From assembly GCA_000708835.1 (NCBI GenBank), contig DF237018.1:176589-240588 (forward strand): 64,000 nucleotides of DNA, written 5' to 3'. This document shows, piece after piece, positions 43,577-64,000 of this stretch. Below the pieces are notes generated by a model. It was given only the letters and a program-made list of their open reading frames with translations. It ran no database searches and had not been told where the DNA came from. Position 1 is the stretch's first letter. The number at the start of each line of letters is the position of its first letter. The stretch comes from Klebsormidium nitens. Taxonomy: Eukaryota; Plantae; Klebsormidiophyceae. The position numbers were made by a program, and so were the translations under genes.

Positions 43577-43637
43577 TTTAGGGGCTTTAGGGTTTTAGGG
43601 CTCCTTGGATATCGGATTGAACTGAACCAAACCCTAA
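43577..43637. promoter_or_regulatory. Telomere-like repeats / telo-boxes in the short divergent promoter between the LOTUS-RRM gene and cassette A
   Basis: tttagggGCtttagggTtttaggg at 43577-43600 and AAACCCTAA at 43629-43637. The homologous motif cluster in copy B is at 52706-52771. Confidence 0.6.
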
Positions 43638-43922
43638 AACCAGAGGCAGTCACGATGCCAGATGATCCCCTTCGCGAGGCAAGCTGTTGCGCTCCTGTTG
43701 CGTGACCATCCCCTTCACCAAACCTGAAATTGCGCCTGTCCATTGCAGATCGAGTTTGCAGTCAACGTGCTGGCGCTTCCCTGTTTCACTTTTTGAGCTC
43801 CCTCAGGTGTCTTGGTACTTATCTTATCGTATTCTTAGATTGGATCTGCTCGAAAACTAGTGACAATTTGGCTCACACAGAAGACGCCCAGCATTGCATT
43901 GATCGAACGCCTGCCCGAGGTG

Positions 43923-44849
43923 ATGAAGATGGATACTGTCAAACTCACCGTCCTGCGCGGCACGCTGGACGAAGAGAATCCCCTCTCGCTTCTCCGTGGC
44001 AATGAGCACATATGGACCAAGGTGTTTGGCTTAGTAGACACTTGGTATGAGGAGCACATAGACCGGAAGTCAGTGGCATTCGACATGGTGGAGACCTTTA
44101 GGGGGCCGCGTTCCTCGCGCCCCTCGCGCCCCGCGCTAGTCTCCTTCCCAGAGCCCCAGGGCATCCAAATCAACATGATGCCAATCAAACTGTTCGATCT
44201 TTACGACACCGTCCCAGCAAACTGCCAGCAGTACATAAGCTGCATCAAGATGTGCGCGGGCGAATCGCGCCAGAAGGACTTCAACCGCGTCGCATACTTG
44301 ACGATCCACGAGAGTGTCGTCCCCGTGGGAGAACCGCAGCGCCGGCCTGGGCTACACATTGAGCAGCCCGGCGGAATTCGGGATGGCGGCTCGGCCAAGA
44401 CACTTGAACACGGACAGTATTACTGGGGCAAGGGGTGGAAGGACGCAGGCCGCAACGAGCTTTCCGATGGGATCTACATGGCTTCCAACGTGAGCAATTC
44501 TTGCACCGTGTGGCCGGTGTTGATCCAGAAACCAAGCGATGTGACGGACCGTCATGGGGGCATTGAGCACATGAGGGAGCGCTTAGGCCCTGGACGAAAC
44601 TTGGCAGCGGGAGAGTTGTGCTGGTTCACCGACCGCACGCCGCACGAGGCGAACCCCCTAACAGCCCCCTCCGATGACCCCGGCGCGAAGTTCAGAGCCA
44701 GGAGCTTTTTCCGCTTAGTGGTGGGGCAAATCTCGGTGTGGTACTCCAAGCACAACACCCCAAAACCCGTTGGGGGTGCTGCCGGACGCGCCAATCTCGG
44801 ACGAGGACAAGTTCAGTTGAAAGGTGAGGACTCGCACGTCGTCCTGTGA
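43923..44849 (+). CDS. Intronless putative 2OG/Fe(II)-dependent dioxygenase-like (DSBH) protein, copy A, with a +1 frameshift near the C-terminus
   Basis: Motifs QINMMP, YLTIHES, QRRPGLHIE (HxE at 44355-44363), GIYMASNV, LCWFTDRTPHE (distal His 44643) and RSFFRLV. Extra A at 44762-44765 (caaaaccc versus caaaccc in copy B) replaces NPLGVLPDAPISDEDKFS* with KPVGGAAGR...HVVL*. Confidence 0.65.
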   Translation: MKMDTVKLTVLRGTLDEENPLSLLRGNEHIWTKVFGLVDTWYEEHIDRKSVAFDMVETFRGPRSSRPSRPALVSFPEPQGIQINMMPIKLFDLYDTVPANCQQYISCIKMCAGESRQKDFNRVAYLTIHESVVPVGEPQRRPGLHIEQPGGIRDGGSAKTLEHGQYYWGKGWKDAGRNELSDGIYMASNVSNSCTVWPVLIQKPSDVTDRHGGIEHMRERLGPGRNLAAGELCWFTDRTPHEANPLTAPSDDPGAKFRARSFFRLVVGQISVWYSKHNTPKPVGGAAGRANLGRGQVQLKGEDSHVVL

Positions 44850-46189
44850 CTCGAATTCACTGGTTGTCAGCTGACCAGTGGTGGAAGAAGCGCCAAAGCT
44901 CCAGAGATGCACCTGAGTTGTTCCGAAGAAAGAATGGCTAAGCAGTGTGAAGACATCCAGAGGAGGTAGCCCGTCTTGAAACACCGCTATCAGCTGGTTC
45001 AGGCTGCCTGCTTTCCTAACTTTATAAGTGCTTCATAAGTGCTGATGCCTGCGCGCAACAGATTGAATACGGTTCGAAACTGGGCTCACTTTCTTGAAAC
45101 GACCCCAGGCAGTCAGTGAGCTTCCGTTCTTGAAGTGAGAGGATGAGGTGCGCAGGCAGCCAAGATCACACACAAGAATTTCTGGAGTCTGCTCCGGGAA
45201 TCTGTTCTTCTCTTGTTTTCGTGCACTGTTGTTTTAATCCATGGAGAAGATGGGTAGGATCTGTGAGTGCTTACCAAGTTTGGCTGGGCACCTTGCAAAA
45301 AGCGCTCAGACAAGACCAGAAAAACGAATTTCGGAAACGTCGTTAACTGCCAGGTGGATTAGCTGATTATGCTGCCTTTTTTCTGAATTTGACATACAGA
45401 ACTCTTCCAAAAAGAAGAGACAGTCTAATCATAGGAACAAGACCACTCCTTGTGGTCTATACCCATTGTCACAATCTTGTACATGCAGATAGGACACACT
45501 TCCTCTACAGGTGACTAGTCAGAATCCTTGGCTAACGCTTGAGGGCAATCCGCCAAGCTTGGGGGCTAGACCAGAATGGACCAATGGACATGAAGGTGAC
45601 TTCCCTTTCTGCTCAAGTAGTAGAGGGGCGCTGGACTACTTCAGAGGCACTTGTCAGTGCAGGATCCACCAACAGAAAGACTATCGATGGATGAGAGGTG
45701 ACGTTTAGCGGCACCTGTTAGCACTGGGCTTTCAAAAGTTTTGGTCTTCAATTATCTCGTGAAGCGGAGAAGCGGCATTCTTGTCAGGAGGAACTTCAAG
45801 TTGATGCGCTTTTCAGGTGTACATTGCCACAGTTGGCAGACGAGCTGGCTGGTTGTCTCTTCCTTACGTAGACTGCAAACTTGAGTTGAGAACTCCTTTA
45901 CTGGAAGCTTATGTACCGGTACGGTCAGTAGGCTGAGTCTGATTACTACTAGTTTGTGTACGCAGGCACTGGTGAGTCTGAGAGCTTTGGCAGGCCCAGC
46001 AAGTTTGCAACGCATGCAGCAACCAGCATTAATCAGATTAGGGGCATACTTGTTTTGTGTTTGACCAGCCATCGTTGGTGAATCGGGCCCATCGTTGTTA
46101 AATCAACTCGCGATCGAACATAAGTCAACCATTCTGAGTGGACGGTTGGCCGGTCACCTAGCAAAAGCAGGACAAGAGCGTCAAGAGCG

Positions 46190-46720
46190 ACAAGAGCGCC
46201 ATCATGCACACCGGCATGCCACGCGCAACTCGAACGTGGGTGAGGTGCAGGTGCAGCGCATGTACTCGGTTGCTAATCATGCAAATGCCACCCGACCAAA
46301 TCCTTATATACGATCGAATCATGTCAGCTAGTATGCAATACACACTTTTTACCGGGTCCTGCAGGACCCGCATGCGCTTACTAGTTAGATCATTGATTCG
46401 ATCATTAACGTGACTCAGATTCGATTGATCGAGGCCGAGGCCTCACGAGCACGCCGTCACTGCGCTATAGCTCGTTCATGCTTTTATTGAGTTCATTTCA
46501 TGCACATGTGTGGGATCGGCAGGATCGCACGGGCCCTTGCACTGGCAGCATGTCAGGCGGGCCCGCCGGCCACGCCGGCGTGTCCCCAGAATCATGCTAA
46601 GTGCGTGCATGTTTCAGAGATGATCATTTTGGAGAATGGATGCAGTACTAACGTACGTGTTGGCGACAGTGTGCGTAACATAATGCGATATTCATAGGCG
46701 CCATAAGTCGAGCCAACCTG
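46190..46720. other. Palindrome-dense spacer between convergent genes of cassette A
   Basis: Perfect 18-bp palindrome CGGGTCCTGCAGGACCCG at 46353-46370, CGCATGCG, CGATCG, ACTAGT, AGGCCT, GGGCCC and many CATG/TGCA. Confidence 0.5.
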
Positions 46721-47011
46721 ATCCGTTGCAAATCAACGTTGGAGCCTGCATGGTCGAATCTACACGCGGCTGAGAAAAATCTGAGCATGCCCGCAGAAAT
46801 ACGTTCACGTTCCGTTCCTCTACAGCTAGCGACACTTGCACAGAAGCTGTTCGTGGTCGTGGGACTCATTGACAAGAGTCCAGCAACGCTTTTCTACGGC
46901 ATAGACCTGTCAAAGACGAGGGCGCCCCTTTTGGACGCTAGGACTTGGGTACTTAACACAGTTTACCGCAACACGGATCAAACACCACCCAAGATCTCAA
47001 CGGCGACTGCT

Positions 47012-50000
47012 TCACCCTTTCGGAACGCACGCCAGCTTGTGACCCCCTCCCTTCCAGTGAAGAGTTTGACACTCCCTGCATGTGACAGGCTTGAGCTTCA
47101 GCTGGACACACTCGGATTGGCAGACTTGCGTTTTCGCAGCAAATCTTCACTCCCTTTGCTTTTACCAAAAGCGACGGCTCTCGACGATTGCAATTGATGA
47201 CTCATTAACATGAAAAGAATGAATGCTACTAGACGGGTTGCAACAAAGCAACGAATGCGACTGGCGCTTACAGGCATGCTTCGAGGAGCAACGTAATCAC
47301 CTGGCCTTTCTCCGTCAAATCCGACAGGGTTAAGCCAGATAGGTAAGTATTTTGCACCGAAACAATGAACAAGACGCCGTCCGTCGTGAACGAAGCAACA
47401 ATTACGAGCAGAATAAATCTGAAGTGAAACAAACGCGAAGGAAAGGCCAAAAGGCGCCTTAACCGGGAGCGTCTCACTTGGAGCAGTAGCGCAAGACTCG
47501 GCAGCGGCCGCATCGGCTCTGCGCGTCGGGTTTGCCGCAGTTGGCGCAGAGCGAAAGGTCCTTCTTGTCGGCGCGCGTGGAGATGGTTTCAGTAAGGGTG
47601 GGGCCGTTAGAAAAACCCTGTCGGGAGAGGATGAACTACACTTGGCAGAGCGAACCGCAGGATCGTACACGTGTCAAGCCAACAAGGGGAGGGTTTACTT
47701 GGTTGCTGTGGTGTTATCAGTTTGCCTGGATAGGAACTGACATAAAAGCCGGCAATCACAATCTTCCGCCAGACATTTCGCGTTCAAGAAAGGTCTCTGC
47801 ACCAAAATTCTGTGGCCTCCCCGTTCTGTTTAGCGTTTGACCTCGTCAAAGGGGCGCTCTGGTAAGGTGGCGCTTTGTTGGGCATCTCCAGCTCTCCTTA
47901 GAGCTCCAACGCGAGGAGGTAACCTAAGCCTTACTCTGTGCATTCGTTCAGCACTCCCCGGGATTGCTGCGAGCGCTTCATACGTGTTAAAGTTCGTCAC
48001 GTGCTCATGACCCCAGATACGCATCCATCTCAAAGACAATTTTGCCCGATTCCCCGCCCTATTGGAACAACATTTTTTTTAACAAATGCTCACCTGCAGA
48101 TTTTCGACTACACGCTGCCCCTTCCCCACCCGCCCCCTGAGCAGGTCCCCCAGATTGCCCCCGAAACCCCCCAACTGCGAAGTGTACAGTTTCGACTCGG
48201 ACTGTGTGCTAGCTGTCGATGCTAACGCTTCTTTCAGCGCCCGTTGCCGATCGGCCAGGTTGAACTCGGTGAAGTCGAAGCGGCCAGTTACGTTGCACGC
48301 CTCGCCGCACTCGGCGAGCTTCTTGCGGTACTCCGGGTGCTTCTTGTTTTTCAGAATCTGCGGAGAGAAAGAGCGGGTTGGAGGTGGGTTGGGCAGATCC
48401 GAAACTCCCGATTCCATCCCAAGCTCTAGTGATTCAATTGCACGTGACCATTGCAGAAACGAAGAATCTCCTAAGTCCTCAAACTAGCAAGTCGCGAAGA
48501 GGGGAGTTGAGCATTGCGTTTTGAAGTCCTGAGACCGATTTTAGTGATCGCCGTTTGGCCGCCTTGATATGCTTCCCGATGTGCAAGTCCGTCCCATTTC
48601 CGGCAGTTAGCAAACCAACTGAAGGCCCTTGACAGCGTGCTTGCAAAACAGTAACCAGGTGTAAAAGCCGTTGCAAAGCTTATGATAGTTGCAGATTTAG
48701 ACACTGTTTAGGTTAGTATGCGCATTTGTTGCGCCCAAACCGCCGTTGCAGATTTAGACACTGTTTAGGTTAGCATGCGCATTTGTTGCGCCCATACCGC
48801 CGTTGCCCTCAAAGGCCCCAAGAGACAACGAAGCTCGAAGGCTCACACGAAGCGACTGAGAGCCCCAGCAAACCCAATTGGGCATACCGTTTCCAAGTTG
48901 TCCGGCCACTCGGGCGAGGAATCCTAGCGAATTTTACGTTAAAGAAAGAGGCCTGTAAAGGTGGGGTGCATATATTGAACGGCAGAATTCCAGGTCGAGA
49001 ACAAGGTTAAGGAGCAGTCTTTTGCACTAGCGCAACTCTCAAACCAGAGGACCGCTCAGAAGTCGGTGAAACGAAGGAACAGGGAGGAGCATGACCGCAG
49101 TCTGCTATCTTCTCTACAATCCGTTCGTTGAATTGATAAGGTAGACCGGTTACCTGCAGCGTCTTGTTGTACCGGACGTTGCCGTGACCATCTTTCGGGG
49201 GGCACCTCCCGCTGCCTTCCAGCACTTCGCAGGCGCGGTTGACTCCTCTGGGCTGTAGAAACACCGAAAGCAATGTAGTTCGGTCAAAGCGTAGAAATAT
49301 AGCACAAATCTCTTTGCCATTCCAGCAGTTCGCAGGCGCCGATTGATTCTCCGGGCGTACAAAGCCCCGGGAATAAAAGCTGTTTTAGTTAACGCGTTAA
49401 GAAACAGAGTAGGAATCCGCTAGGGATCATCATAAATTTGCCGCCTTCCTCGTTCGAGTGGGGCTGCCAACGGTCGTTGATCGAACCTGGTACATAGTTT
49501 ATGAAGTTGGAATAGAAAGCTTCCTACCAGTTGCGGGTCAGATGCAACAAGGAAGAAATACATGTGTTCTCGCTTCGGTTTGCTACCAACTGCTTAGACT
49601 GAAGCCGGTCAGAGGCAGACTGTATACAAACTGTTAGAAATTCTCTGTCGCACGGACACATGAGGTTGAGGACTCAACAGCGACCGGCGTTGTAAAAAGA
49701 GTCCAGCAACGGAAGGAAAGGCTTAAGAGAACCCACCTTAAAATGTTCTCGACTTCAAGTTCGTGACGCCACATGTCCCCAATGTCGTACGTCCAGCCCA
49801 GACGGGCGCCTTTTTCCGTCAGCAAGTCGCCGAGCTTGTACTGCAAACCAATGCGCAAAGGGACCGCGTCAGGGGTATCATACACACTTCAGACTCTGCC
49901 TACCACTGCGTCAGGGAGCTTTTATCAACGCGAAGAGGGGTGTTTCTTCGACGTGCATTTGTAGCAAAGGCATGCGTCGCCCAAATCTTACGGACTTTTG

Positions 50001-52162
50001 TCAGGGCAGGGTAATGACAAACGAGCGAGAAACAAATGTAAACGCAGAAGCCAAAGCATGAGATGGATTCGTCTCCGGCCTGGCGCATAAAGTACCCTGA
50101 AGACAGAGACGTCAGGAGCACTTTCGTCAGGAGCATTTCTCTCAGCCAGCCAGAGTGAAAGAGCAACTTCTATCGAACATTGTTCAGCTCACATCAAAAA
50201 CTCCCTTGACTGCTTTTAGACAAGTCAAAGAAAGTAATTGACCGACAAATAAAGGAGGAGGAGTATGACCTCGCACAAAAATCATGCAATCTTCGTCGTG
50301 ATCACAACAGTTGCCTCACCTTCTTGTCGTCCATCAGGTAAAAGTAGCTGAAGTTGACGTGCATCATGTCGATTGCGTTGCTGTCCTTGGGCACGAAGCA
50401 CGCGCCTTCCCGCCGGTCGCAGAACACGTATCCATGGTAGTTGCGCACCCAACCCGTTATCGGCATTAGAACTTTGTCCGCCAGCGTGTTGAGCACGATT
50501 CCGCCAGAAACCTTGAATCTGCGAGACAGAGAGTATACAATGCGCGGCCTGGCTTTGTCAGCGGGTCTCTCGACTTTTCTTGAAGTCGGAAATCTTTTGA
50601 GAAGGCGCGCTTGCCCCAGTGGAACCCAGCAGGTTTGGTTCAGCCTGTCTCACGTCAACTTTTCTGATCACCCTTTTGAATACAAACCCTTACATGAAAA
50701 CACATTCAACACAATAATCAAGACCTGGAGCTATCTGTCCAAGCACTCAATATGGTCAGTGTCTGGGTCACGGTCAGGTTGTAAAGGCTGTTGTGGGTTC
50801 GGTGTTCTCTTTGTTTCGGGGGTATCGGCCCTGCTGACCCTATTGTGTAAGAGTCTTCCATGAGATGTGTCTTCCCCATTAGGCTTGGCGTGCGCATGAA
50901 AAACGGAGATTCCTGTCGATAAAGACCTGTATCTATGCCAACTATAAGCTCTATCCACATATCCCCATCACGTATCTTAGAACTTGGTCGAAAAGTCTGA
51001 ACCTTCTGTCCTGAGGTCACCGCATGAGTTCCTGACCACTCATCAACCTCTGTTCTTCAAGAAAGACTTTCTGAACCTCCTTTCCTGAGTCCCCACCAAG
51101 CTAGTGCCGATTGATGTTGGCGGTATCAAACAGCACAACGTTTCTTCCCATCACCTCTGCCCACATGACTCAATTCTGACCGCTGTACTCACCTTTCTCC
51201 AGACGGGGGGATCCAGCTCAGGCATGTACATCTTAATTGCATAATCCTGCTTGTACCGCTGCGTCGCCCTGTCTTTGGCAGCCGCCAACTCTTCATCTTT
51301 CCGTTCCGCCAACTGCAAAAAGATGCTGAAACTGAGAGACTAATGCAGACATCCAGTTCCAGTTGGCCAACAGCAAGACTCTCTCGAAGGTGGTCTCCTT
51401 TTTCCCCTTTCAAAGTTCTGTGCATACATCAGCGCGGTCAGGGAAGCTGGATTGACTGGGCTTTCTTTGACTTGACTCTGTTTGGTTGCGACATACCACG
51501 CCAACTCAAGAGCTGGATGCTTCAAGGCGTTGAAGAAAAGGATTCACCCTCTACTGCGAATTAGAATTGGGAGACTGTACACTGCTGGGTTTGTGATTGG
51601 GAGACTACAGCGCTCCAAGTCAACAACTCACAACCTCCTCCTGAAATGGATACATATCAACAATCAAGCGCTGAACGCAGGAGGTTTACGGAGAGAGGCT
51701 AGTCCAGGACTTTGTAACATTATCAAAGTGCAATGTGACAACCAGCGCAATGTCCCTTTCCGAGTAGATCATCTACGTCTGCATTTGCCGCATCGCCCGT
51801 GCCATTCCTTACTCTGGCCCCGTCTCTTGCTGATCCCCACCTTCCAACACTCCCCACCGATCAACCACCTCCGCTTTCGGCCGCCATACGGCTGGGTCCT
51901 CTTCGCGAATGACCCGCAGAATCGCGGACAGATCGTCATGCGGATCAATGTGCACAAAAGGCCCCATGCCTCTGCTGCTGCGCAGTGGCGCTGCCGCTGC
52001 TGAGGTTGGCGCAGCCGCTGCTGAGGTCAGCGCGGAGCTAGCCTCGCTCATGCCTGCAATGTGTGTGCCCTCGTCTTTGTCGCTCATCTCCGAACTGGAC
52101 CCTTTACCCTGATCCTCCTCACCTGATGCAATGCCAAGCTTGTCCCACTTCCACAAGTCCAC
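47012..52162 (-). pseudogene. pRiA4b ORF3 (MM3350)-like domain + C-terminal MYND zinc finger gene, copy A, disrupted
   Basis: Exons encode FKVSGGIVLNTLADKVLMPITGWVRNYHGYVF, YKLGDLLTEKGARLGWTYDIGDMWRHELEV, EGSGRCPPKDGHG and CANCGKPDAQSRCGRCRVLRYCSK-ECQTLHWKGGGHKLAC*. Lesions: in-frame TAA at 51809-51811, TAG at 51773-51775, and a 1-nt deletion near 49236. The 5' end is unresolved. Confidence 0.8.
48688..48806. repeat. 57-bp near-perfect tandem duplication in an intron of copy A
   Basis: gttgcagatttagacactgtttaggttag(t/c)atgcgcatttgttgcgccca(a/t)accgcc at 48688 and 48745; not duplicated in copy B. Confidence 0.9.
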
Positions 52163-52669
52163 TATTGTTGATACCAGGCCTGTCTGACGGCAAATCTACC
52201 ACTTCACAAAGTGCGGAGCGCAGATTGCTGTGTTGCCGCCTTGCTCCAGGAACTCGTGAACCCTTCTTCTAGACCCCTGTCGTTGTAGCCCGCTTTAAAA
52301 ATACCAACAGGGCGGATACCTAGTATCTATGATTGTAGTCTGTATGAACTTTCTAAAATAAAGTCTTGCACGCGCGGCTGGTCAGGTAGCTGTCGCAGAG
52401 GAGCATACGCCTCGAGGGCTAGTCATGGAGTGAACGCTTGATGTCCATCAACTTTCTACAGACAAAGGGAGAACAGAATGAGCAATAAAATCTAGGACCA
52501 GCTCCTACAGGGCTCCTAGTACCTAGTTACAGTAGGCTACTGTAGCTTTGGAAATGAAGAATCAGAAGATGGCAGGAAGATGTGCTGGCATTAACATTTG
52601 TGTGGGCGGAAGATGCAATGTCTTTCTGACTTTGTCACTTTGTCAGTGTCAGTGTCACTGCGTGTCGTG

Positions 52670-52702: not shown

Positions 52703-52913
52703 GACTTTAGCCTTTAGGGTTTTGGGTTACCTTAAAGTTATAGCCAGCCTTTCGAGACAACCAAACCCTAAAACCAGAGCCAGTGCTAGACTGAGATGAT
52801 CCCCCTTGCTCGTTCAGGCTGAACTTCAGCTGAACATTGCGTGAGTCGGCAGCGTGACCATCCCCTTCACCAAGTGCTGCAGACCTGAAAAGCGCGTGTA
52901 CACTACATGCATA

Positions 52914-53180
52914 CCGTACCAACACGCCGGTTGGGCAGATTTTTGCCCAATAATTAATTACGTACGAATTGAAATTTGGGCAACTCATTTTGGAATTTTT
53001 GAGAATTTGAAATTTTTAGAATATATGCTCGAGAACTCTTTTTCCACCAGCCAAAGTTGATCAGAGATTAAATATTAGAATTTTAATTCATTTGAAAATT
53101 TGGGCAGAATGAAAAAAAGAATAAAAATAGTCAAAATCAAATATAATTAATTGATGCCCAACCGACACGTGTTGGTACGG
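52914..53180. mobile_element. 267-bp AT-rich MITE, Tc1/mariner-like (TA target-site duplication)
   Basis: TA at 52912-13 + CCGTACCAACACGC-CGGTTGGGCA ... TGCCCAACCGACACGTGTTGGTACGG + TA at 53181-82 (imperfect ~26-bp TIRs). Non-coding interior. Absent from the equivalent site in copy A (~43730-43760). Confidence 0.85.
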
Positions 53181-53345
53181 TACATACAGCTCCGTTTCAA
53201 TGTTGCAGTCAACGTGCTGGCGCACAAACTTCACGCTCCCTCAGGTGCCCGGTACTTGTGTTCTAAATTTGTGTTTGCTCGAAGGCGAGTGACAATTGGG
53301 ACTCACCCAGAACGCGCCCCGCGTTGCATCAAATGCTTGTCAGAG

Positions 53346-54245
53346 ATGTTGAAGATGGATACTGTCAAACTTACCATTCTGCGTGGCACACTGGAGGAAG
53401 ACAATCCCCTCTCGCTCCTCCGCGGCAATGAGCACATATGGTCCAAGGTGTTTGGCCTAGTTGACACCTGGTATGAGGAGCACATAGATCGGAAGTCCGT
53501 CGCATTCGACTTGTTAGAGGTCCTTGACTCTGAAGAGAGGCCGCGCACCTTTCGCTCTGTGCTAGTCTCCTTCCCAGAGCCCCAGGGCATCCATATCAAC
53601 ATGATGCCTATCAAACTGTTCGAGCTCGACGAAACTGTCCCAGCAAACTGCCAGCAATACGTAGACTGCATTGAAATCTGTGCGGACGAAACGCGCCCGA
53701 GAAAGTTCAACCGCGTCGCATACTTGACGATCCACGAGAGTGTCGTCCCCGTGGGAGAAGCGCAGCGCCGGCCTGGGCTACACATTGAGCAGCCCGGCGG
53801 GATTCGGGACGGCGGCTCGGCTCAGCCCCTTGAGTTTGGGGAGTATTACTGGGGGAGGGGTTGGAAGGAAGCAGGCTGCAACGAATTCTTCGAAGGTATT
53901 TACATGGCTTCCAATGTCAGCGATTCTTGCACCGTGTGGCCGGTGTTGATCAACAACCCGACCGAGGTGTCGGACCGCCATGGGAGCATTGAGCACATGA
54001 GGGAGCGCTTGGGCCCTGGACGCAACCTGGCAGCGGGAGAGTTGTGCTGGTTCACCGACCGCACGCCGCACGAGGCGAACCCCCTGAAAGCCCCCTCCGA
54101 TGACCCCGGCGCAAAGTTCAGAGCCAGGAGCTTTTTCCGCTTAGTGGTGGGGCAAATCTCGGTGTGGTACTCCAAGCACAACACTCCAAACCCGTTGGGG
54201 GTGCTGCCGGACGCGCCAATCTCGGACGAGGACAAGTTCAGTTGA
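53346..54245 (+). CDS. Intronless putative 2OG/Fe(II)-dependent dioxygenase-like (DSBH) protein, copy B, intact (~299 aa)
   Basis: Open frame MLKMDTVKL...NPLGVLPDAPISDEDKFS*. HxE at 53781-53789 (RRPGLHIE), distal His at 54069 (TDRTPHE), RSFFRLV. The ORF extension upstream of 53346 runs into the MITE and is not credible. Confidence 0.72.
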   Translation: MLKMDTVKLTILRGTLEEDNPLSLLRGNEHIWSKVFGLVDTWYEEHIDRKSVAFDLLEVLDSEERPRTFRSVLVSFPEPQGIHINMMPIKLFELDETVPANCQQYVDCIEICADETRPRKFNRVAYLTIHESVVPVGEAQRRPGLHIEQPGGIRDGGSAQPLEFGEYYWGRGWKEAGCNEFFEGIYMASNVSDSCTVWPVLINNPTEVSDRHGSIEHMRERLGPGRNLAAGELCWFTDRTPHEANPLKAPSDDPGAKFRARSFFRLVVGQISVWYSKHNTPNPLGVLPDAPISDEDKFS

Positions 54246-55479
54246 AAGGTGAGGACTCGCACGTTAATCTGTTACCCAGATTCAGTGGCTGTCAGCTGAC
54301 CTGTGGTGAAAGAAGTGCCAGAGCTCCAAAGATGCACCTGAGTTGTTCTGAAGAAAGAATGGCTAAGCCGTGTGAAGACATCCAGAGGAGGTAGCCCACC
54401 TTGAAACATTGCTAACAGGTTGTTTAGGCTGCCTGCTTCTCGTAACTCGTGAGTGATTTACAAGTGCTGATTCCTGGGCCAAGTAGATCAAACTCGTTTG
54501 AAACTGGCTCACTTATTTCGAACCACTCCAGGCAGTCAGTGTGCTTCCGCCTTCTTTGGTGTCTGCAATTTGAAATGAAAGTGTGAGGTTCGCAGGCGTT
54601 TGTAGGCAGTCCAAGATCACTAGCGAGATCCTCTAGAGTCTGTCCTGGGACACCATTTACTTACTTGTGTATACTGCACCTTTGATTCCAGGATAAGATG
54701 GGTAGGAATCTGTGAGTGCTTGCCAGTTTTGGCTGGGCGTCTTGCATCAAGGATGCGGACAAGACCTGAATGTTTTTGTCAGAAACATCTTCAACTGCCA
54801 GGTAGATCAGCTGATGATGCTGACTTCTCGACTCCTTCCTTTCGCATACAAGACTCTTTCAAGTAGAGGAGACAGTCTGATCATTGGGGTACATATGCAA
54901 ATCCGTTCTGGTCTATAAGCCTTGTCATGGTATGTATATGCAGATGGGACACTCTGCATGACCGGGTGACTGGTCAGAATTTTTGGCTGACGCTTGAGGG
55001 CGACCTGCCAAGCTTGGGGCTAGACTTGAGAAGAGGTGATGAGCACATCAAGCACAGTGTTGACATCTCTTTCTGCTCAAGCTTAGAGGGGCGCTCTGTA
55101 CACTTGAGAGACACTTTGTGGGGTTCCCCAACAAGAACACTATCAGGGGGTCAGAAATGGCCAGCGCTCAGCCGCCCCTATAAAGCTTTAGGTAAGAATT
55201 TTGGTGTTGATTATTCATCCGGTGACGCGGCATTACTAGCAGGAGGAGCATCGAGTGCTTTCCAGGTGTACATTAACCCAGCCGGCACAGTGACTGTTGA
55301 TTAAAAGTTTTGAGCAGCACTATAGTATGTAGAGCAATCGTGGTTGAGTAGAGAGTGCGTCGTTGGAAGCTGATCCTAATAGATTGAGTCTGCATGATGA
55401 GGTAGTGACTGGTAGTAGACAAGAGTCTGAAAACTCTGCATAAAACCAATGCCAGCGCATGCATGAGGAGCATATTCAA

Positions 55480-55790
55480 AACGCATATATAGCAACCAGC
55501 GTAAGATTTCTATTATATGGCACACGTGACCGCAGTTGTTTCATGATTATTGTGATTGTACATGACGTACCAAGGCGGCTGACCCGTCGTTGGCCGCGGC
55601 CTTAATTCCGGCCATGCATGTCCGAAGTTGGTATACTTAAAGCGGTAAGATGGATCCGAGACGCGAATTGATTTAATTAATTGTTTATACCTTTCACTGA
55701 ATCATGATTAGCCTTATGAGCTAGCTAACCTCGAGTACTAAGTTGGGCCAGGTCAAAGATATGCATGGAAATCAGCGGTATGCCACGGCC
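55480..55790. other. Palindrome-dense spacer between convergent genes of cassette B
   Basis: GGCCGCGGCC, CATGCATG, GTATAC, GGATCC, TTAATTAA, AATCATGATT, AGCTAGCT, CTCGAG and AGTACT within about 200 bp. Not visibly alignable to the spacer of copy A. Confidence 0.5.
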
Positions 55791-56182
55791 ATCATTGTGA
55801 CCATCATGCGCAGTAAGCAAGCACACGTACCTGGCATCGGTGACGAAATGCCACCTCGAAGTACTGCCAGATTCATTCAAGGCGCCATGACCCGACCCAT
55901 GCACAGGCTCTGATCCGTCACAAACGATCAACGTAAGGCTGGTCGGATTTGCACGCCGCTGAATACCTCAGATGCCTCTCCTTTATACTTATAGGGCAAC
56001 ACTTACGCCGGAAATGTTCGTGGGACTCAACGATGAAGTTCGATAATGCGTGCCTGTAAGGCACAGGCCTGCCAGAAACAACGCCGCCCCTTTCGAAAGT
56101 TTGAACCTGGGCCTGTTCTCAGCACGATTACCGCAACACGCATCGCATGTCACCCCCAACGTATTAATGCCGAATGAACGCT

Positions 56183-59100
56183 TCATCCTTTTGGGACGCA
56201 CGCAAGCTTGTGACGCCCTTCCTTCCAATGAAGAGTTTGACACTCCCTGCACGTAGGGTGAGGAGTGGTTGGCCATACTCAAACGAGCAGACCTTAAGTA
56301 GCAGAACACTTCACTCTCTTTGCAATCACAAGGAACGACGTCTCTCGCCGAATGCCGCTGATGACCTTCTCACCTGAATTCCACGAACGCAACCGAATGG
56401 GTTGCCACCAACGAGAACTACGGCTTACAGCCATGCTTCGAGAACCGGAACCAACGGAACGACCCGGCCTTATCCCTCTATCTTTCCAACCCTTGAGGGG
56501 TACATCAAGGTGAAAGCCATCTGCACTTCGACAAGGGCGCTCCGCCTAAAGTACAGAAACGAAGGGAATGGGACAGCCTGGACTGGAAACACGACGAAAA
56601 CAGAGGCAACGTGAGAGGGCACGCGTGCGCGTCTCACTTGGAGCAGTAGCGCAGTACTCGGCAGCGGCCGCATCGGCTCTGCGCGTCTGGCTTGCCACAG
56701 TTCGCGCAGAGCGAAAGGTCCTTCTTGTCCGCGCGCGTGGAGATGGTCTCTGTTAGGGTGGGGCCGTTGGAAAAACCCTGGAGAGGATGAGCTAAACTTG
56801 GCAAAAGCGAACGGCAGGGTCGAACAGGTGTCGAGCCAACAAGGGGAAAAGTTTTTTCAGTTACGGTTGCTGTAATCAGCTTGCGTGAATAGTATCTGAA
56901 TTACAAGCCTGCAAATCACAAGTTTGCGCTAGAATCCCACGTCGAGATGGGTCTCTGAACCAAAGTTTGTGGACCTCCCCGTTCATTTTAGCATTTGACC
57001 TTGTCAAAGAGGCCGCTAAAAGGCAATCTGGACACGTGGCGCTTTGTTCGGCGTCTCAAGCTACTTCATGATCTCCAACGCAAGGAGACCACTTGACCCT
57101 TAGTCTGTGCATTCCTTCAGCACTCCCCGGAATGCTGTGCGCGCTTCATACACGTCAAAAGTTGTCATGCGCACATGACCCCAGATACGCATCCGTCTCG
57201 AAGACAATTTTGCCCACTTTCCGCCCATATCAAAACAACACTAATTCAACAAATGCTCACCTGCAAATTTTCGACGACACGCTGCCCCTTCCCCACCCGC
57301 CCCCTAAGCAGGTCCCCCAGGTTGCCCCCGAAACCCCCCAGTTGCGTAGTGTACATTTTCGACCCGGACTGTGTGCTAGCTGTCGATGCTAACGCTTCTT
57401 TCAGCGCCTGTTGCCGTTCTGCTAGGTTGAACTCGGTGAAGTCGAAGCGGCCGGTTACGTTGCACGCCTCGCCGCACTCGGCGAGCTTCTTGCGGTACTC
57501 CGGGTGCTTCTTGTTTTTCAGGATCTGCGCAAAGGAAGAGCGCATTGGGGGCAGTTGAAAAACTTCAGGATTCTCGATTCCATCTCAAACCTCAGTAACT
57601 TGATTGCACGTGAGGTATGCGGAAACGAAGATCTCCTGACTCGTCAGAATAGCAAGTCGCGAAAAAGGGGGGATCGAATGAATTGCATTCGAAAGTCCTG
57701 AAACTGATTTCGGTGACCGGTTGGCCGTCTTGATATACTTCCCGAAATGCAAGTTAGGCCAAGCCCCGGCAATTGTCAAACAACCGACGGCCTTTGTCAG
57801 CGCCTTGCAGAACGGTGATCTGGTATCATAGCCAATGCAAAGCTTAAGATTATCTACAAATCCTCTTCGAGCTTCAAACTGGTTTCTACAAAGTAAGGGT
57901 GCGGACTTGTTGCGGCCAAAGCGTGTGACGTGTTCCAAGGCCCCAAGAAACAACGAAGCTCAAAGGCTCGCACGAAGCAACTGAAAGCACCAGCAAATCC
58001 GATTTGGGTATACCGTTTCCAAGTCGTCCAATCGGGGAAGGAATCCTTGCGGACTTTACGTCAAAGGACAGAGGCCTTTAAAGAGGGGCACAGAATTTGA
58101 ACGGCAGAAGTCCAGGTCGGGAACAAGGCTATGGCGCAACCCCTTGGGGTTGAACCAATTCTCAACAAAAAAGTCGCTCAGAAGTCGGGGAAACGAAGGA
58201 ATTCGAAGGAGCATGACCGCAATCTTTGGTCATCTCTTCGATCCGTTCCTTCAAATTATAAGCTAGACCAGTCACCTGCAGCGTCTTGTTGTACCGGACG
58301 TTGCCGTGACCGTCTTCCGGGGGACATCTCCCGCTGCCTTCCAGCAGCTCGCAGGCGCCCGTTGACTCCTCTGGGCTGCAGCGAGCATCCGAAAGATTGT
58401 CTTATTCAGTCCAAGAGTGAAGACACCGCTTCGCAGCATCATTTAGTTGTCGCCATTCTCGTTCGTCTGGGGCAGTTGAGCGAACCTGCTGCAGTTTTCT
58501 CGGGACTCGAAGGAGCCGGCTTCTGACGATTTGCGGCCACTTTTGCATAAGAGGACTCAAACCACTGATGCTTGCCCTCTTCAGGCTGCGACCACTTTTC
58601 TAGATTGACGCTGACTGGAGGCGAACGTTATATCACTGTTTAGAGAGTCTCTGTTGTACGGACAACTGAAATCAAGGACTCACGCAGCGACCGGCGCTGT
58701 AACGAGAGTCAGTGATTGAAGACAAGGGGTAAGAGGACCCACCTCAAAATGTCTTCGACTTCGAGCTCGTGGCGCCACATGTCCCCAATGTCGTACGTCC
58801 ACCCCAGACGAGCGCCTTTTTCCGTCAGCAAGTCGCCGAGCTTGTACTGCACAGTTGCAGCACAATGGGACACGTCAGGAGTACTATACATACTCCAGAC
58901 TCTGCGCACCGCTGCGACAGGGAGCTTCGATTAGAGAAGAAGGGTGTTCCTTTGACCCTGAATTTGTCTGCAAAGGCACGCTTCGCCACATTCTGACGAA
59001 CTTGTGTCAGGCAAGGCATTGACAGCCGATGCGCCCACAAGAGGAGTGCCGAAGCGTCGGTGGCAACTTGACTTGCCAGAGCTCGGAGTACGTCGTCTCT

Positions 59101-61251
59101 AAAGATTTGAGTGCAAAGTCTCCCGGAATCAAATAGCCAGCAATCAATGCCCCCCCCCGAGCACAGAGTCACTTTTGTCCAACATTGCTAAGCATACCAA
59201 GGACTCTCATGCACTCGGTCTGGTCTCTGTCCCCTGGATAAATAGAAGACAGACAGAAAGGTAAGGAGACAGCCCTCACTTTAGAAGTACACAGATGCAC
59301 TTATCCTTTTTCTTCAACCGCCCCACCTTCTTGTCGTCCATTAGTACCTTCAGCTGAACTTGCCGTGCATCATTACAATCGCTTTGAAAACAATTCAATA
59401 TCAAAAAGTCAGGAGAAATTGCTCTTTTTCCCCGCAGCTCTCTCACTCTTTTATCGTCCATCAGGTAGAAGTAGCTGAAGTTGACGTGCATCATGTCGAT
59501 TGCGTTGCTGTCCTTGGGCCCGAAGCACGCGCCCTCCCTCCGGTCGCAAAACACATACCCGTGGTAGTTGCGCACCCACCCCATTAATGGCATCAGAACT
59601 TTGTCGGCCAGCGTGTTGAGCACGATTCCGCCGGAAACCTTGAACCTGGAAATGGAGAATGGAATTTCTTGCCGCAGCCAGCTTTGATCAGCGGGTTGCT
59701 TATCAGCCTTGTTAGTCAACTGTTTCCCGGAAGAGAGTGATACGCTCTTGAACCTGTTGAAAACAGCAGGAGGTTTGTTCCCGTGCTCAGCCTCATCCAT
59801 ATCAGCTTTTCCGAGTCATTGTATTGTGGTAGAAGGCTTACAGTGAGAGACTTGTATCGAACCTGGGAGCTATGTTCTGAGGCACTCAACTTGGTTAACT
59901 GGCTTGTGAGGTCAGGTTGTGAAGACTGGCGAAAGCTTCCTGTTCTTTCACTTCGACAGATCCCCCGCTTGTGTCGGTTGTTCTCATTCCTCTACTGTCC
60001 TTGGGTGTCAAAGCGGCGTGCGTGCGCATGTCACTAACTTGATGGAAAATCCGACAGCTGAGCTGTACCAGGTACAAGGATATTTCTGTGGATCATACTC
60101 AGGAGAACTTGGAAAAGAAAAACATCAGCCCTGGGTCAGAAGGTCTGAAACAATGCCCGGAGCTCACTGCTTCCACCCCTGTCTTTCATTGACAATATCT
60201 ACTTGTTCCCCAAGTTCCACCAAGCTGGCAATATCAACGTGCACACTTTTTGCTTCTGCCACGAGACTTGAAGCTGAGCGCTAAGTCACCTTCTCCGGAC
60301 GGTTGGATCGAGCTCAGGCATGTACATATTTATCACATAATCCTGCTTGTACCGCTGCATTGCCCCGTCTTTGGCAGCTGCCAACGCTGCATCTTTCCGT
60401 TCCGCCAACTGCAAGAAGATGCGCGAAGCGAGCCGCTGATGCACAATCCCAGTTTGTGTCGGCATAACCCTCTCAAAGGTGGTCTCCTTTCCCTTCCAGA
60501 GTTCTGAGCAAGTATTAGCGCAGAGAAGCCCGGATGAGTGGCGACCCCAAATCGACTTCATCCAAACGCAACATACCCTGCCAAGTCAAGGACTTACTGC
60601 TTCAATGTATTCAAAGAGGATAGACACTCTGTATCGCTGAACGGACCTGGAAGCCTTTGCAACCTGTTGGAGCCTGTTTGGGAGACTTCAGTGCTGGAGT
60701 TCAAGAGCTCACACCCCCTTCTGACATGTTGAAGCATACCAATGATCGAGGGCTAAACGCAGGAGTCTTACGAGGAAAGGCTGATCAACGCAAGTGTCAC
60801 AAAGCTACCACCCAATATGGCGACCACCGCAATGCTTGCCTTCTTGATAAACTGCACTTCAGGCGTGTCCCTCCCTGAGTAAATCATCTGCGTCTGCATT
60901 TGCCGCATCGCCCGCGCCATTCCCGATTCCGGCCCCGTCTCTTGCCGGTCCCCGCCTTCCAACACTCCCCACCTCCGCTTTCGGCCGCCATACGGCTGGG
61001 TCCTCTTCGCGAATGACCCGCATTATTGCGGACGAGTCGTCGCGCGGATCGATGCGCACAAAAGGCCCCATGCCTCTGCCGCTCCCCAGTGGCGCCGCTG
61101 CTGCTGCGGTCGATGCAGCCGCTGCTGTGGTCAGCGCAGCGCTTGCCTCGCTCAAACCTTCAGCGAGTGTGCCCTCGTCGAACCGGACCTTTCGCCCTGG
61201 TTCTCCTCACCTAATGCAATGCCAAAGCTTGTCTCACTTTCACAAGTCCAC
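56183..61251 (-). pseudogene. pRiA4b ORF3 (MM3350)-like domain + C-terminal MYND zinc finger gene, copy B, probably disrupted
   Basis: Same exon series as copy A, with PEESTGACELLEGSGRCPPEDGHG intact and MYND CANCGKPDAQSRCGRCRVLRYCSK-ECQTLHWKEGRHKLAC*. Lesions: 11-nt deletion at 60970/60971 relative to A (frameshift) and TGG>CGG at the conserved W of the PxVWRR motif (60295-60297). The 5' end is unresolved. Confidence 0.75.
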
Positions 61252-64000
61252 CACTGTTGAAACAGGGGCTGTCTGATTGGCAAAATATAATTTCACAAAA
61301 TGTGGAGCGCAGAATGCCAAGTTGCCGCCTTGCTCCAGGGTTCAGAAACCCCTTGTTCAGTCCCCTGTCGTTATAGCCTGCTTTGGAATTCCAACCAGTG
61401 CGGATAGTATCTATATTTTTGTAGTCACGAAAGGAGGTTTACAGAATCCCGTCTTGCACGAGCGGGTGGTCAGATGGAGATTGCGAACGAGCATGCGCCT
61501 TATACTTGAGGGCTAGTCACCAAGGGAACGGTTGAGGTCCGTCAACTTTTGACAGACAAAGGAAGAAGAGGACGAGCAACAAAATGTAGGACCAGCGGCC
61601 TACACACAGATGTCAGGCAGCTTTGAAGACTGAAATTGAAGATGGCAGGAACAGATGTCTACAGTCAGTCATTGCGTGACGGTGCCGTGATTGGCTAGCG
61701 AGCTTTCCACGGGATTCACGTGGGTCACGTGGTCGTAAATCTGGGCGACCGCGAAGCAGAGTACCGCGCAATCAGAGACGCCGACCCTCGAAATCACCCG
61801 GTCGTCCACCCCACATTGTAACCTTGTATATACAGCCCTGAGCTCGACCACTTGATCCGCGGTCTGCCAGTCTGCGAAGAGTTGGGAAGAGTCTGGCAAG
61901 CTGTCGATGTGAATTGGACTGTTCAATCGGGAAAATGGGGGAGAACCGGAGCTCTAGAGCTGGAGGCTCAAAGTGTCTACCACGCCGGCAAAAGTCAGCG
62001 TTTGTACATCTTGTTAAGAATCACTGGTGCATGATCAACCGTGAAAGATGCCACGTCCTGAAACGCGGCGCCGTTTCAAAGGTCCGGTTCTTTCAGCACA
62101 TCGATGACCCCCTTCTGACAATGTTGAGAACTTCGAAGCAACTTCAATTTTGAGCAGGGAGCCGCAAAACGGTGAGCTGACGTCGCTCCCCAGTATCGTG
62201 CCTGACTGGACCCACCCGTATTCTGAACAAGTCAAGGCCACCAGTCTGAGCCTGAAACAAAGGTCAACGATGCGTCTGTCGTCGTGAGAAACCTTCCAAC
62301 GTATCGGCTTGAGTAGCTTTGAGCGGCACCACCAGACTGCCTCGTCGAGAGTTTTCCCGCCCTTCTGGGCACGTAGCTTTTCCTTGGAGCAGATTAAGTA
62401 CGACGCTTTTACGCCCGGCCGTTTGACGAAGGTGCGAGAGCCTACGTTCTGCTTCTGCAATATGGTCGTTCGTCTTCATTCTCGCCAGATTCCCGCTGAA
62501 TCCGCTCATCGCTTTCTCGTACCAAATTCCGAAGTTTCCTGATCCCATAAAAGGCCGCTAAACGCATATAGGTGCCCAGATCTGTTATCATGGTCAGCCC
62601 CACTCCTCTTTTCCGTGTACGTTCAAAGCCAGTTTCTCAACCACCCCCCTTGTCAGATGGTCAACTAGATGTCAGTGCGCACCCCGTCCTAAGGAAGCTC
62701 GCCTATCTAGTTGTCATTCTCATAAGCTCAAAGTTCTGTGAGCGACCGTGGAGAGTGTGGGCTTCGTCCAACCGGAAAAATCGAGGTGTCATCTTGGCCG
62801 TTTGTGAGCCGTCTTTGACTCTTGTTGGAGTCAAAGAGGCTACCCACTTGACTGTTTAGGCAGTGGACGAGAGTAGAAGGCTTTGCACAAGTTGCTGAGC
62901 GCATCTTATGGTCAGACTCAGCCGAATCTTGCGGATCCGAAAGAGAGCCCAAGTCGAGTGAAGTCAGCGGGCCGTTCCCCTGGCATCGCGTCCCTGACGT
63001 TAGCCAGACGTCATCGGGGCAGCAGGTTGTTGAGCGACTTGCATGGCTGCGGTTGTGCCACGAGCTCACTGGCGCCCGTCTTCTTCAATTGCTTTCGTCC
63101 GCCCACTTCAAGCTGGGGCCGTTCGCTCCGGGCGCACTCTGACGAGGCCGGACTGCCTGATGGTCTTCCTGTGGATCCTCAAAACTCGCAACGGTGTTTC
63201 TTCCACGAACCTGCAACATTCCATCCAATCAACTCTACCAGATTTCGGAGACGTCGCCTGACTTCGGAGAGTTTCTTATATGTTGCAAAGTCGTTTTGAG
63301 TGTTAAACAGCTGAAATTCTGTCACTTTTTCTGGGGGCTCAACGCGGGCCTGAAAGCACATTTTGAAAACGGTATGTCGAAAGTCGTGACGCAGCTCTGG
63401 GCCTTCTTCTTTTAGCTTTGACCTTGGGGTTCTGAACACGGTGATATCTTGGAAACTATCCTCCAAATTGCATTCCGCTCATCAAATTTTGAGAGACCAA
63501 TCTGGGTGCCGAAGCCAACTTGCGAATCTTTCAAGCCAGCTCCTCGACGAGTCGCTCGTCAGCTGTTTGCGGTGGGCTTGGCTAAATCATGGTCTAGATC
63601 ATGGTCTAAAGATGGTGAACCACTGAAAGCACCTTATCTGAGAGCCAGGTTTTTCATCCCCCAACTTTACCACTGGGTAGAGGCGAAGACGGGGGGCTAC
63701 TTCCACCTCGCTCGGTGGGCGAAAGTATGTCGCGCTATAGCTGGGCAATCCTTCTTCTTGTTAGCGGGATTCCACAAAACCGACTTTTCGCAGGTGGGCT
63801 GAGAGAACGCATTCAGCGGCTGGCCATAGTTTGTGACCGTTTTCGTCACGTTTGAAGCAGTTGCCATGACAAAAAACACTTCATGTTATGATCAGCAGTG
63901 TCTCATGTAAACAGGACGAAGTATGAGCTGGTGGGTATGCAAATCTTCGTCTTTAGACTTCTTCTTGCGGTGGGTCGAACCTGAGAAGTGGTTCTAGGGG

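Follow-up and report, generated by a model that had tools for sequence, protein, structure and literature searches.

The 64-kb window analyzed here, the whole stretch of 64,000 nucleotides (nt) from contig DF237018.1 of the alga Klebsormidium nitens, carries KFL_000690410, a gene that we refer to as copy B. An original prediction, made from the DNA letters alone, had described it as an uninterrupted open reading frame (ORF) of about 299 amino acids (aa) coding for a dioxygenase, possibly of lateral or viral origin. Its features, in coordinates of the window, are as follows.

53346 to 54245, forward strand: coding sequence of copy B, KFL_000690410, with 299 uninterrupted codons plus a stop.
53346 to 53492, forward strand: N-terminal three-helix region, aa 1-49, from the secondary structure (DSSP) of the predicted model; structural matches begin at about residue 50.
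53493 to 54242, forward strand: predicted double-stranded beta-helix (jelly-roll) core and conserved C-terminal tail, aa 50-299, from the predicted structure and fold searches.
53766 to 53789, forward strand: RRPGLHIE, aa 141-148, in which Fe(II) is proposed to be bound by H146, as proximal His, and by E148, as carboxylate.
54054 to 54074, forward strand: TDRTPHE, aa 237-243, in which H242 is the proposed distal His ligand.
54126 to 54140, forward strand: RSFFR, aa 261-265, in which R261 is the proposed binder of the C5-carboxylate of 2-oxoglutarate (2OG) and R265 is a second invariant Arg.
54241 to 54596, forward strand: intron in the public model of copy B, with GT at 54241 and AG ending at 54596, from comparison of the model with the DNA.

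Translation of 53346 to 54245 on the forward strand yields 299 aa with no internal stop, and the product matches GenBank GAQ81063.1 (KFL_000690410, K. nitens) with 100% identity across the 299 aa. The ORF is part of a longer stop-free frame that runs from 53151 on, with a start at either M1 (53346) or M4 (53355). Across the six frames of the window, nine ORFs are at least 220 aa long, two of which are copy B and its paralogue. The protein is colinear over its full length with viral and K. subtile homologues. In the public model, which is 311 aa long, a splice at the last codon skips the stop and adds 12 residues, an extension that no homologue supports. Because ...DKF(S) is the terminus of all homologues, the K. 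subtile protein known from a transcript among them, and the plain ORF likewise ends at ...DKF, the homology-supported coding region of copy B is, as read from the sequence, uninterrupted. Translation and end-to-end colinearity thus bear out the ORF as originally described, with the putative annotated 3' intron as the one qualification, and the three motifs are placed as claimed.

Residues expected to be catalytic are nearly invariant in an alignment of 141 sequences from jumbo phages, giant-virus contigs, and eukaryotes. Both H146 and H242 are His in 140 of 141 sequences, and the sole exception at H242 is a truncated paralogue. E148 is Glu in 134 and Asp in six, R261 is conserved in 140, and R265 in 138. 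Conservation extends to surrounding positions: R141 (140 of 141), R142 (139), and G144 (all 141) in the first motif, D238 (139) and P241 (140) in the second, and E131 and W235, which are also near-invariant (139-141). Another four residues, N85, T240, E243, and H278, are kept in 130-134 sequences. The triad and the Arg are kept in all six aligned homologues from named eukaryotes, including those from oomycete, coral, and protists, as well as in the unnamed EukProt protein P0086. In the DSSP assignment of the predicted structure, a short strand (242-244) begins with H242 and the last long strand (258-268) contains R261, positions that are canonical for the distal His and the 2OG-binding Arg in Fe(II)/2OG oxygenases. 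R261 is 19 residues past H242, a distance shortened by ∼10 residues in homologues without the variable loop that separates the two. Given these canonical strand positions, we infer that H146, E148, and H242 would converge on one metal site.

The predicted structure places these residues in a recognizable fold. An AlphaFold2 model of copy B, built on 54 homologues, has a predicted local distance difference test score (pLDDT) of 90 and a predicted template modeling (TM) score (pTM) of 0.86, and consists of three N-terminal helices (aa 4-44; DSSP) followed by a beta-rich core. A Foldseek search against the PDB ranked KanJ first, with EvdO2, HygX, halogenases, and a proline hydroxylase in the top 50. 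In a Foldseek-free structure scan, the top 13 representatives are all annotated as Fe/2OG-type oxygenases, as are nearly all of the top 50. In the ESM Atlas, PhyH is the nearest named cluster (TM of 0.43), and three unnamed virus-rich clusters score higher (TM of 0.60-0.76); a feature search of the same resource limited to named clusters gave no usable match. As modeled, the copy B protein adopts the double-stranded beta-helix typical of Fe(II)/2OG oxygenases. The jelly-roll and the conserved His/Glu/His residues with a late-strand Arg had been proposed in advance as tests of the dioxygenase reading, which finds support in both the predicted fold and the near-invariance of the HxE...H...R pattern among the 141 homologues.

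Sequence models, in contrast to structural comparisons, mostly fail to detect the protein. A Pfam scan at E up to 10 returned no family, PF05721 included, NCBIfam and PADLOC scans returned nothing, and searches of PDB sequences with the single protein and with a 54-homologue profile found no 2OG oxygenase chain. Matches to IFT88 and to a designed helical protein among PDB sequences were rejected as chance hits. Relative to these resources, PHROG 8970 (function unknown) is the only sequence model that detects copy B, at E 3.3e-16 over aa 73-250 and profile positions 10-188 of 205, a match that places the protein in a family without explaining function. In the literature, we found no mention of the gene or its accessions, of PHROG 8970, or of the homologues in viruses.

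Relatives of copy B are numerous and predominantly associated with large viruses. A word search identified 265 relatives, and among the 120 listed, nearly all are unnamed metagenome proteins with 37-63% identity and none has a Pfam domain. A profile search of 1.84 billion representatives yielded 1,809 clusters (50% identity) at E up to 1e-3 and 648 at E up to 1e-30. Contigs around full-length relatives were, in every case inspected, compact and intron-free, with viral cargo of a eukaryote-like kind. A 609-kb contig has XRN, tubulin-tyrosine ligase, and PheRS, and a 752-kb contig has a kinase and an F-box protein. Other sets are PIF1 helicase, DUF5765, a Dam methylase, and GIY-YIG; RING and UCH domains; BTB/BACK with polysaccharide lyase 14; and AP2, HNH, and GT2. 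IMG/VR has 18 loci, some on contigs of giant-virus metagenome-assembled genomes (GVMAGs). Entries in BFVD include those of Catovirus CTV1 (E 1e-19), Orpheovirus, and klosneuvirus types, along with jumbo phages Noxifer, RPSC1, and pEa_SNUABM_47, and tblastn added Salicola phage SCTP-2 and Erwinia phage Huxley. The three-helix N-terminus is present in the long forms of giant viruses and eukaryotes. It is absent from the short forms of phages and others, which are ∼200 aa in length, lack the N-terminal 60-70 residues, and align only from about aa 64-74 onward.

Cellular homologues are scattered. Among named eukaryotes, homologues are found in Aphanomyces, Achlya, Thraustotheca, the octocoral Dendronephthya, a foraminiferan, a dinoflagellate, a choanoflagellate, Paulinella, and a chytrid. 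A pattern-based scan of prokaryotes, with one genome for each of 185,579 species, matched only three loci, all in metagenome-assembled genomes (MAGs) of GTDB. In the first, L007, a 442-kb contig (CALNZV010000004.1) of a "Desulfobacteraceae" MAG, the homologue is beside SET, JmjC/Cupin_8, UCH, and a eukaryote-type FAD synthase, and by this gene content the contig is evidently that of a giant virus mis-binned into a bacterial MAG. The others are a 1.8-kb fragment (L006) and a short form with 35% identity (L008). The sporadic distribution originally suggested for the family essentially holds for phages and protists; among prokaryotes, one of the three loci in 185,579 species is mis-binned.

Neighboring and fused genes do not point to a substrate. 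When 431 ORFs from 26 loci were clustered, no recurrent gene partner emerged and neighbors were shared only between near-identical viral genomes; in phages SCTP-2 and Huxley, the neighbors of the homologue are not paralogues. Fusions to ankyrin repeats (Thraustotheca), to a WWE and an NADP-Rossmann domain (Nonionella), and to an Rpb1 fragment were each seen once, and the N- and C-terminal extensions of 33 long homologues have no domain in common. The fusion partners are too thin to name a substrate. In Thraustotheca clavata (P0265), two oxygenase domains flank the ankyrin repeats. The Nonionella stella transcript (P0337, EukProt), in which WWE and NADP-Rossmann domains (F420_oxidored, P5C-reductase type) precede the oxygenase domain, is a possible chimera. 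A virus-like 14-kb contig encodes a 1,923-aa protein with four tandem oxygenase domains (L035:3152-8923; P0249). Several paralogues of the family can also occur in one viral genome, as in IMGVR_UViG_3300033066_001528 (L020 and L022) and in one 752-kb contig (P0088 and P0096), and are adjacent in one case.

Phylogenetic patterns are consistent with a viral source for the algal genes. In three trees, of 139, 80, and 76 rows, sequences of K. nitens and K. subtile form one clade with support of 99-100 in the Shimodaira-Hasegawa-like approximate likelihood ratio test. In the 76-row tree, the Klebsormidium clade is inside a clade, supported at 95-98, with 9-10 proteins from checked giant-virus contigs and in which the only other eukaryote sequence is P0086. 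Oomycete and coral sequences are elsewhere in the 80- and 76-row trees, as are those of other protists in the 76-row tree, and phage-type proteins are not in the well-supported clade with Klebsormidium. Uniting all named eukaryotes and Klebsormidium in a single clade was rejected, at a cost of 363 log-likelihood units and p of 7.5e-111 in the approximately unbiased test, which used a quick search under LG+G4 and a constrained group defined after the tree was seen. Because the Klebsormidium genes form one clade nested among giant-virus sequences, transfer from giant virus to alga, not from bacterium to alga, is the likely route on sequence grounds. The simplest reading is that a giant virus passed the gene on once, before the split of K. 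nitens from K. subtile, and that duplications followed, with the direction one that we infer. This reading agrees with phycodnavirus-like core genes found in the genome of K. flaccidum/nitens and the transcriptome of K. subtile (PMC5294986). As in a giant-virus-derived gene, the nearest relatives are on giant-virus genomes and the host sequences are nested within them. Hence, the suggested lateral or viral origin gains support, and distribution and trees point to a giant-virus-like donor.

The name copy B implied a second copy, and one is indeed present in the window, within a tandem duplication.

43920 to 44849, forward strand: copy A, KFL_000690390, found by tblastn of the copy B protein against the window (81% aa and 87% nt identity).
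43847 to 52509, no strand assigned: tandem duplication unit 1, from self-BLAST of the window.
53276 to 61604, no strand assigned: tandem duplication unit 2, from self-BLAST of the window.

The duplication has a period of ∼9.4 kb, which is also the distance of copy A upstream of copy B, and its units are ∼80% nt identical in blocks. Within the second unit, nine ORF pieces of at least 90 aa from 54.9-61.2 kb, scanned singly, had no Pfam match. All catalytic residues are intact in copy A. The sole indel between the coding regions is one extra A near 44762, in an A-run of copy A (44757-44770; AAAA vs. AAA in copy B), which causes a frameshift at about codon 281, past which the conserved tail can be read in a different frame (44764-44817). 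This frameshift could be genuine damage or an error of assembly in the homopolymer, and the latter would fit 454-type reads, which we presume to be behind the assembly. For codons 1-279, the synonymous divergence (dS) between copies is 0.31, the nonsynonymous divergence (dN) is 0.107, and dN/dS is 0.35. Because dN/dS is 0.35 at a dS of 0.31, amino-acid change has been constrained since the duplication, under moderate purifying selection. The public models of both copies splice out the stop and add a short nonhomologous C-terminus. A third paralogue, KFL_000690220 (232 aa), is on the same scaffold, outside the window, and breaks off before the distal His. In K. subtile, a full-length homologous transcript has intact catalytic residues.

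We consider it probable that copy B encodes an Fe(II)/2OG oxygenase of an uncurated family, nearest in fold to the PhyH-like group, and that the gene was acquired from a giant virus by an ancestor of Klebsormidium and retained. Retention is the part most directly challenged by an unlikely alternative, in which the gene is a fossil of an endogenized giant virus, viral in origin, without function in the alga, silenced, and slowly decaying. The frameshift in the conserved tail of copy A and the truncation of KFL_000690220 fit decay, and a published paper reports enrichment of repressive methylation on those K. nitens genes that derive from viruses (PMC12344493), consistent with silencing; the supplements of that paper do not list this gene. 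But a dN/dS of 0.35 is at odds with the absence of function, the catalytic residues are all intact in copies A and B and in K. subtile, where the transcript is full length, and the lesion in copy A amounts to one extra A that could be an assembly error. Remains of an endogenized virus are also not evident nearby. In tblastn against the window, the 431 ORFs from the flanks of 26 viral and related loci matched only the two oxygenase copies, so that in this limited test, bounded by those flanks, copy B is not within a block of other viral genes such as a giant endogenous viral element.

The assignment of 2OG dependence faces a less likely challenge, that the protein has a jelly-roll fold and is a cupin-type metal enzyme with another co-substrate or a noncatalytic binder. 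Fold alone would be compatible with either; against both, the full HxE...H...R pattern is near-invariant across ∼140 diverse sequences, with the carboxylate position varying only from Glu to Asp, and the leading matches in the Foldseek-free scan are all annotated as Fe/2OG-type oxygenases. An origin in bacteria or bacteriophages, as a prokaryote-like dioxygenase rather than a giant-virus gene, is very improbable. Jumbo phages do have shorter homologues, three GTDB MAG loci were matched, and one match is labeled as from a Stutzerimonas MAG. Nevertheless, the phage-type proteins lack the N-terminal region and are outside the well-supported clade of Klebsormidium, and the MAG loci reduce to a mis-binned giant-virus contig, a fragment, and a divergent short form. 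Contamination of the assembly, by viral or bacterial DNA misplaced in an algal scaffold, is hardly credible: contaminating viral DNA would bring a gene of this kind and the chytrid homologue is flagged UNVERIFIED_CONTAM in GenBank, but on a 240-kb scaffold, two diverged copies (81% aa) are part of a tandem duplication with a 9.4-kb unit, host-type genes account for the other long ORFs of the window, the GC content at third codon positions of copies A and B is 73-75%, and a homologue from a second Klebsormidium species groups with the K. nitens copies.

If copy B encodes a virus-derived Fe(II)/2OG oxygenase, its mechanism can be outlined from the conserved residues. H146, E148, and H242 would form the facial triad that holds Fe(II), and R261, at the start of the last jelly-roll strand, would bind the C5-carboxylate of 2OG, possibly assisted by R265. 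Oxidative decarboxylation of 2OG would generate a ferryl species that oxidizes the substrate, and the enzyme is most likely a hydroxylase. The substrate would be held by polar residues invariant across the family, N85, E131, Q140, R141, R142, D238, T240, E243, H278, and N279, together with the conserved C-terminal tail. Because all close structural neighbors are small-molecule oxygenases and R141 and R142 flank the metal motif, our guess, tipped only slightly from even, is that the substrate is a small metabolite, polar or anionic and of amino-acid, sugar, or nucleotide type, and not a macromolecule. In the proposed history, the ancestor of Klebsormidium would have taken the gene from a giant virus (Nucleocytoviricota), the gene would have been duplicated at least twice, and it would have been kept under moderate purifying selection.

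A more far-reaching proposal, which we regard as doubtful, is that the family is a virus-borne oxygenase with a novel substrate or reaction and a target common to bacterial and eukaryotic cells, which would be why giant viruses and jumbo phages both carry it, and that eukaryotes have captured it independently at least four to five times and put it to use. The captures counted are those of Klebsormidium, saprolegnian oomycetes, the octocoral, and protists (foraminiferan, dinoflagellate, and choanoflagellate). If this is true, a use in the host, such as in stress metabolism or antiviral defense, would account for both the purifying selection and the tandem amplification seen in Klebsormidium.

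Comparisons with known systems separate what is shared from what is particular to the family. The PhyH-like structures considered, of the PF05721 clan, were EvdO2 (4xac), ThoJ (6zyl), ColD (8xpf), KanJ (7cl2), human PAHX (2a1x), EctD (4nmi/3emr), proline hydroxylase H11, and GriE. Relative to these, the Klebsormidium and viral family has no detectable sequence similarity and only 5-15% identity in structural alignments. Particular to it are the three-helix region at the N-terminus, the signature QRRPGLHIE, a second invariant Arg that follows the first by four residues, and an invariant 30-residue C-terminal tail (WYSKHNTPNP...DKF). The copy B protein is PhyH-type by its modeled fold, yet it does not reach the gathering score for membership in PF05721. 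For the AlkB family, no alignable HxD...H...RxxxxxR motif was found, and hhalign of the family profile against E. coli AlkB gave a probability of 0.2%, too low for a comparison of motifs residue by residue. Proteins of PHROG 8970 and of viruses, represented by Catovirus CTV1 (A0A1V0S8Z7), Pseudomonas phage Noxifer, Ralstonia phage RPSC1, Salicola phage SCTP-2 (gp479), and Erwinia phage Huxley (gp127), are true homologues by sequence (E 3e-16 to 3e-24) with catalytic residues in common. The Catovirus protein has the same fold (TM by target of 0.86), whereas the phage forms differ in being ∼190-230 aa and in lacking the first 60-70 residues.

Giant-virus-derived genes of algae offer the closest precedent for the history of copy B. 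A previous survey followed five core viral genes, usually in viral gene clusters (Gallot-Lavallee and Blanc 2017; PMC5294986). Those genes and copy B are alike in host genus, viral nearest relatives, uninterrupted coding region, and presence of K. subtile transcripts. Copy B differs in being a lone accessory gene amid host-type DNA, tandemly duplicated with a host-type neighbor and under purifying selection. It offers a concrete example of how a lineage near the land plants kept and amplified one accessory gene of viral origin. The chemistry of Fe/2OG oxygenases and the capture of giant-virus genes by algae are both known already, and no new principle is implied. What is new is the family, a distinct and uncurated one within a known superfamily, which spans jumbo phages, giant viruses, and scattered eukaryotes in ∼1,800 clusters at 50% identity, and which has an extremely conserved active-site signature and no curated model, structure, or assigned substrate. 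A cultivable and sequenced streptophyte alga with an intact copy under selection provides a clean route to the substrate of an enzyme common in large viruses.

Sequences upstream of the two copies are partly shared. Both copies are preceded by a short inverted pair of telomere-like repeats, at 43578-43640 and 52717-52780, of TTTAGGG/TTTTAGGG type and followed by AACCCTAAAACC. An identical 20-nt block, gtgaccatccccttcaccaa, comes after the telomere-like repeats upstream of copies A and B. The repeat pair could be a promoter element of the telo-box type or a small element of inverted-repeat type. An AT-rich segment of ∼220 nt (52930-53150), ahead of the duplicated block that begins only at 53276, is directly upstream of copy B and has no counterpart upstream of copy A.
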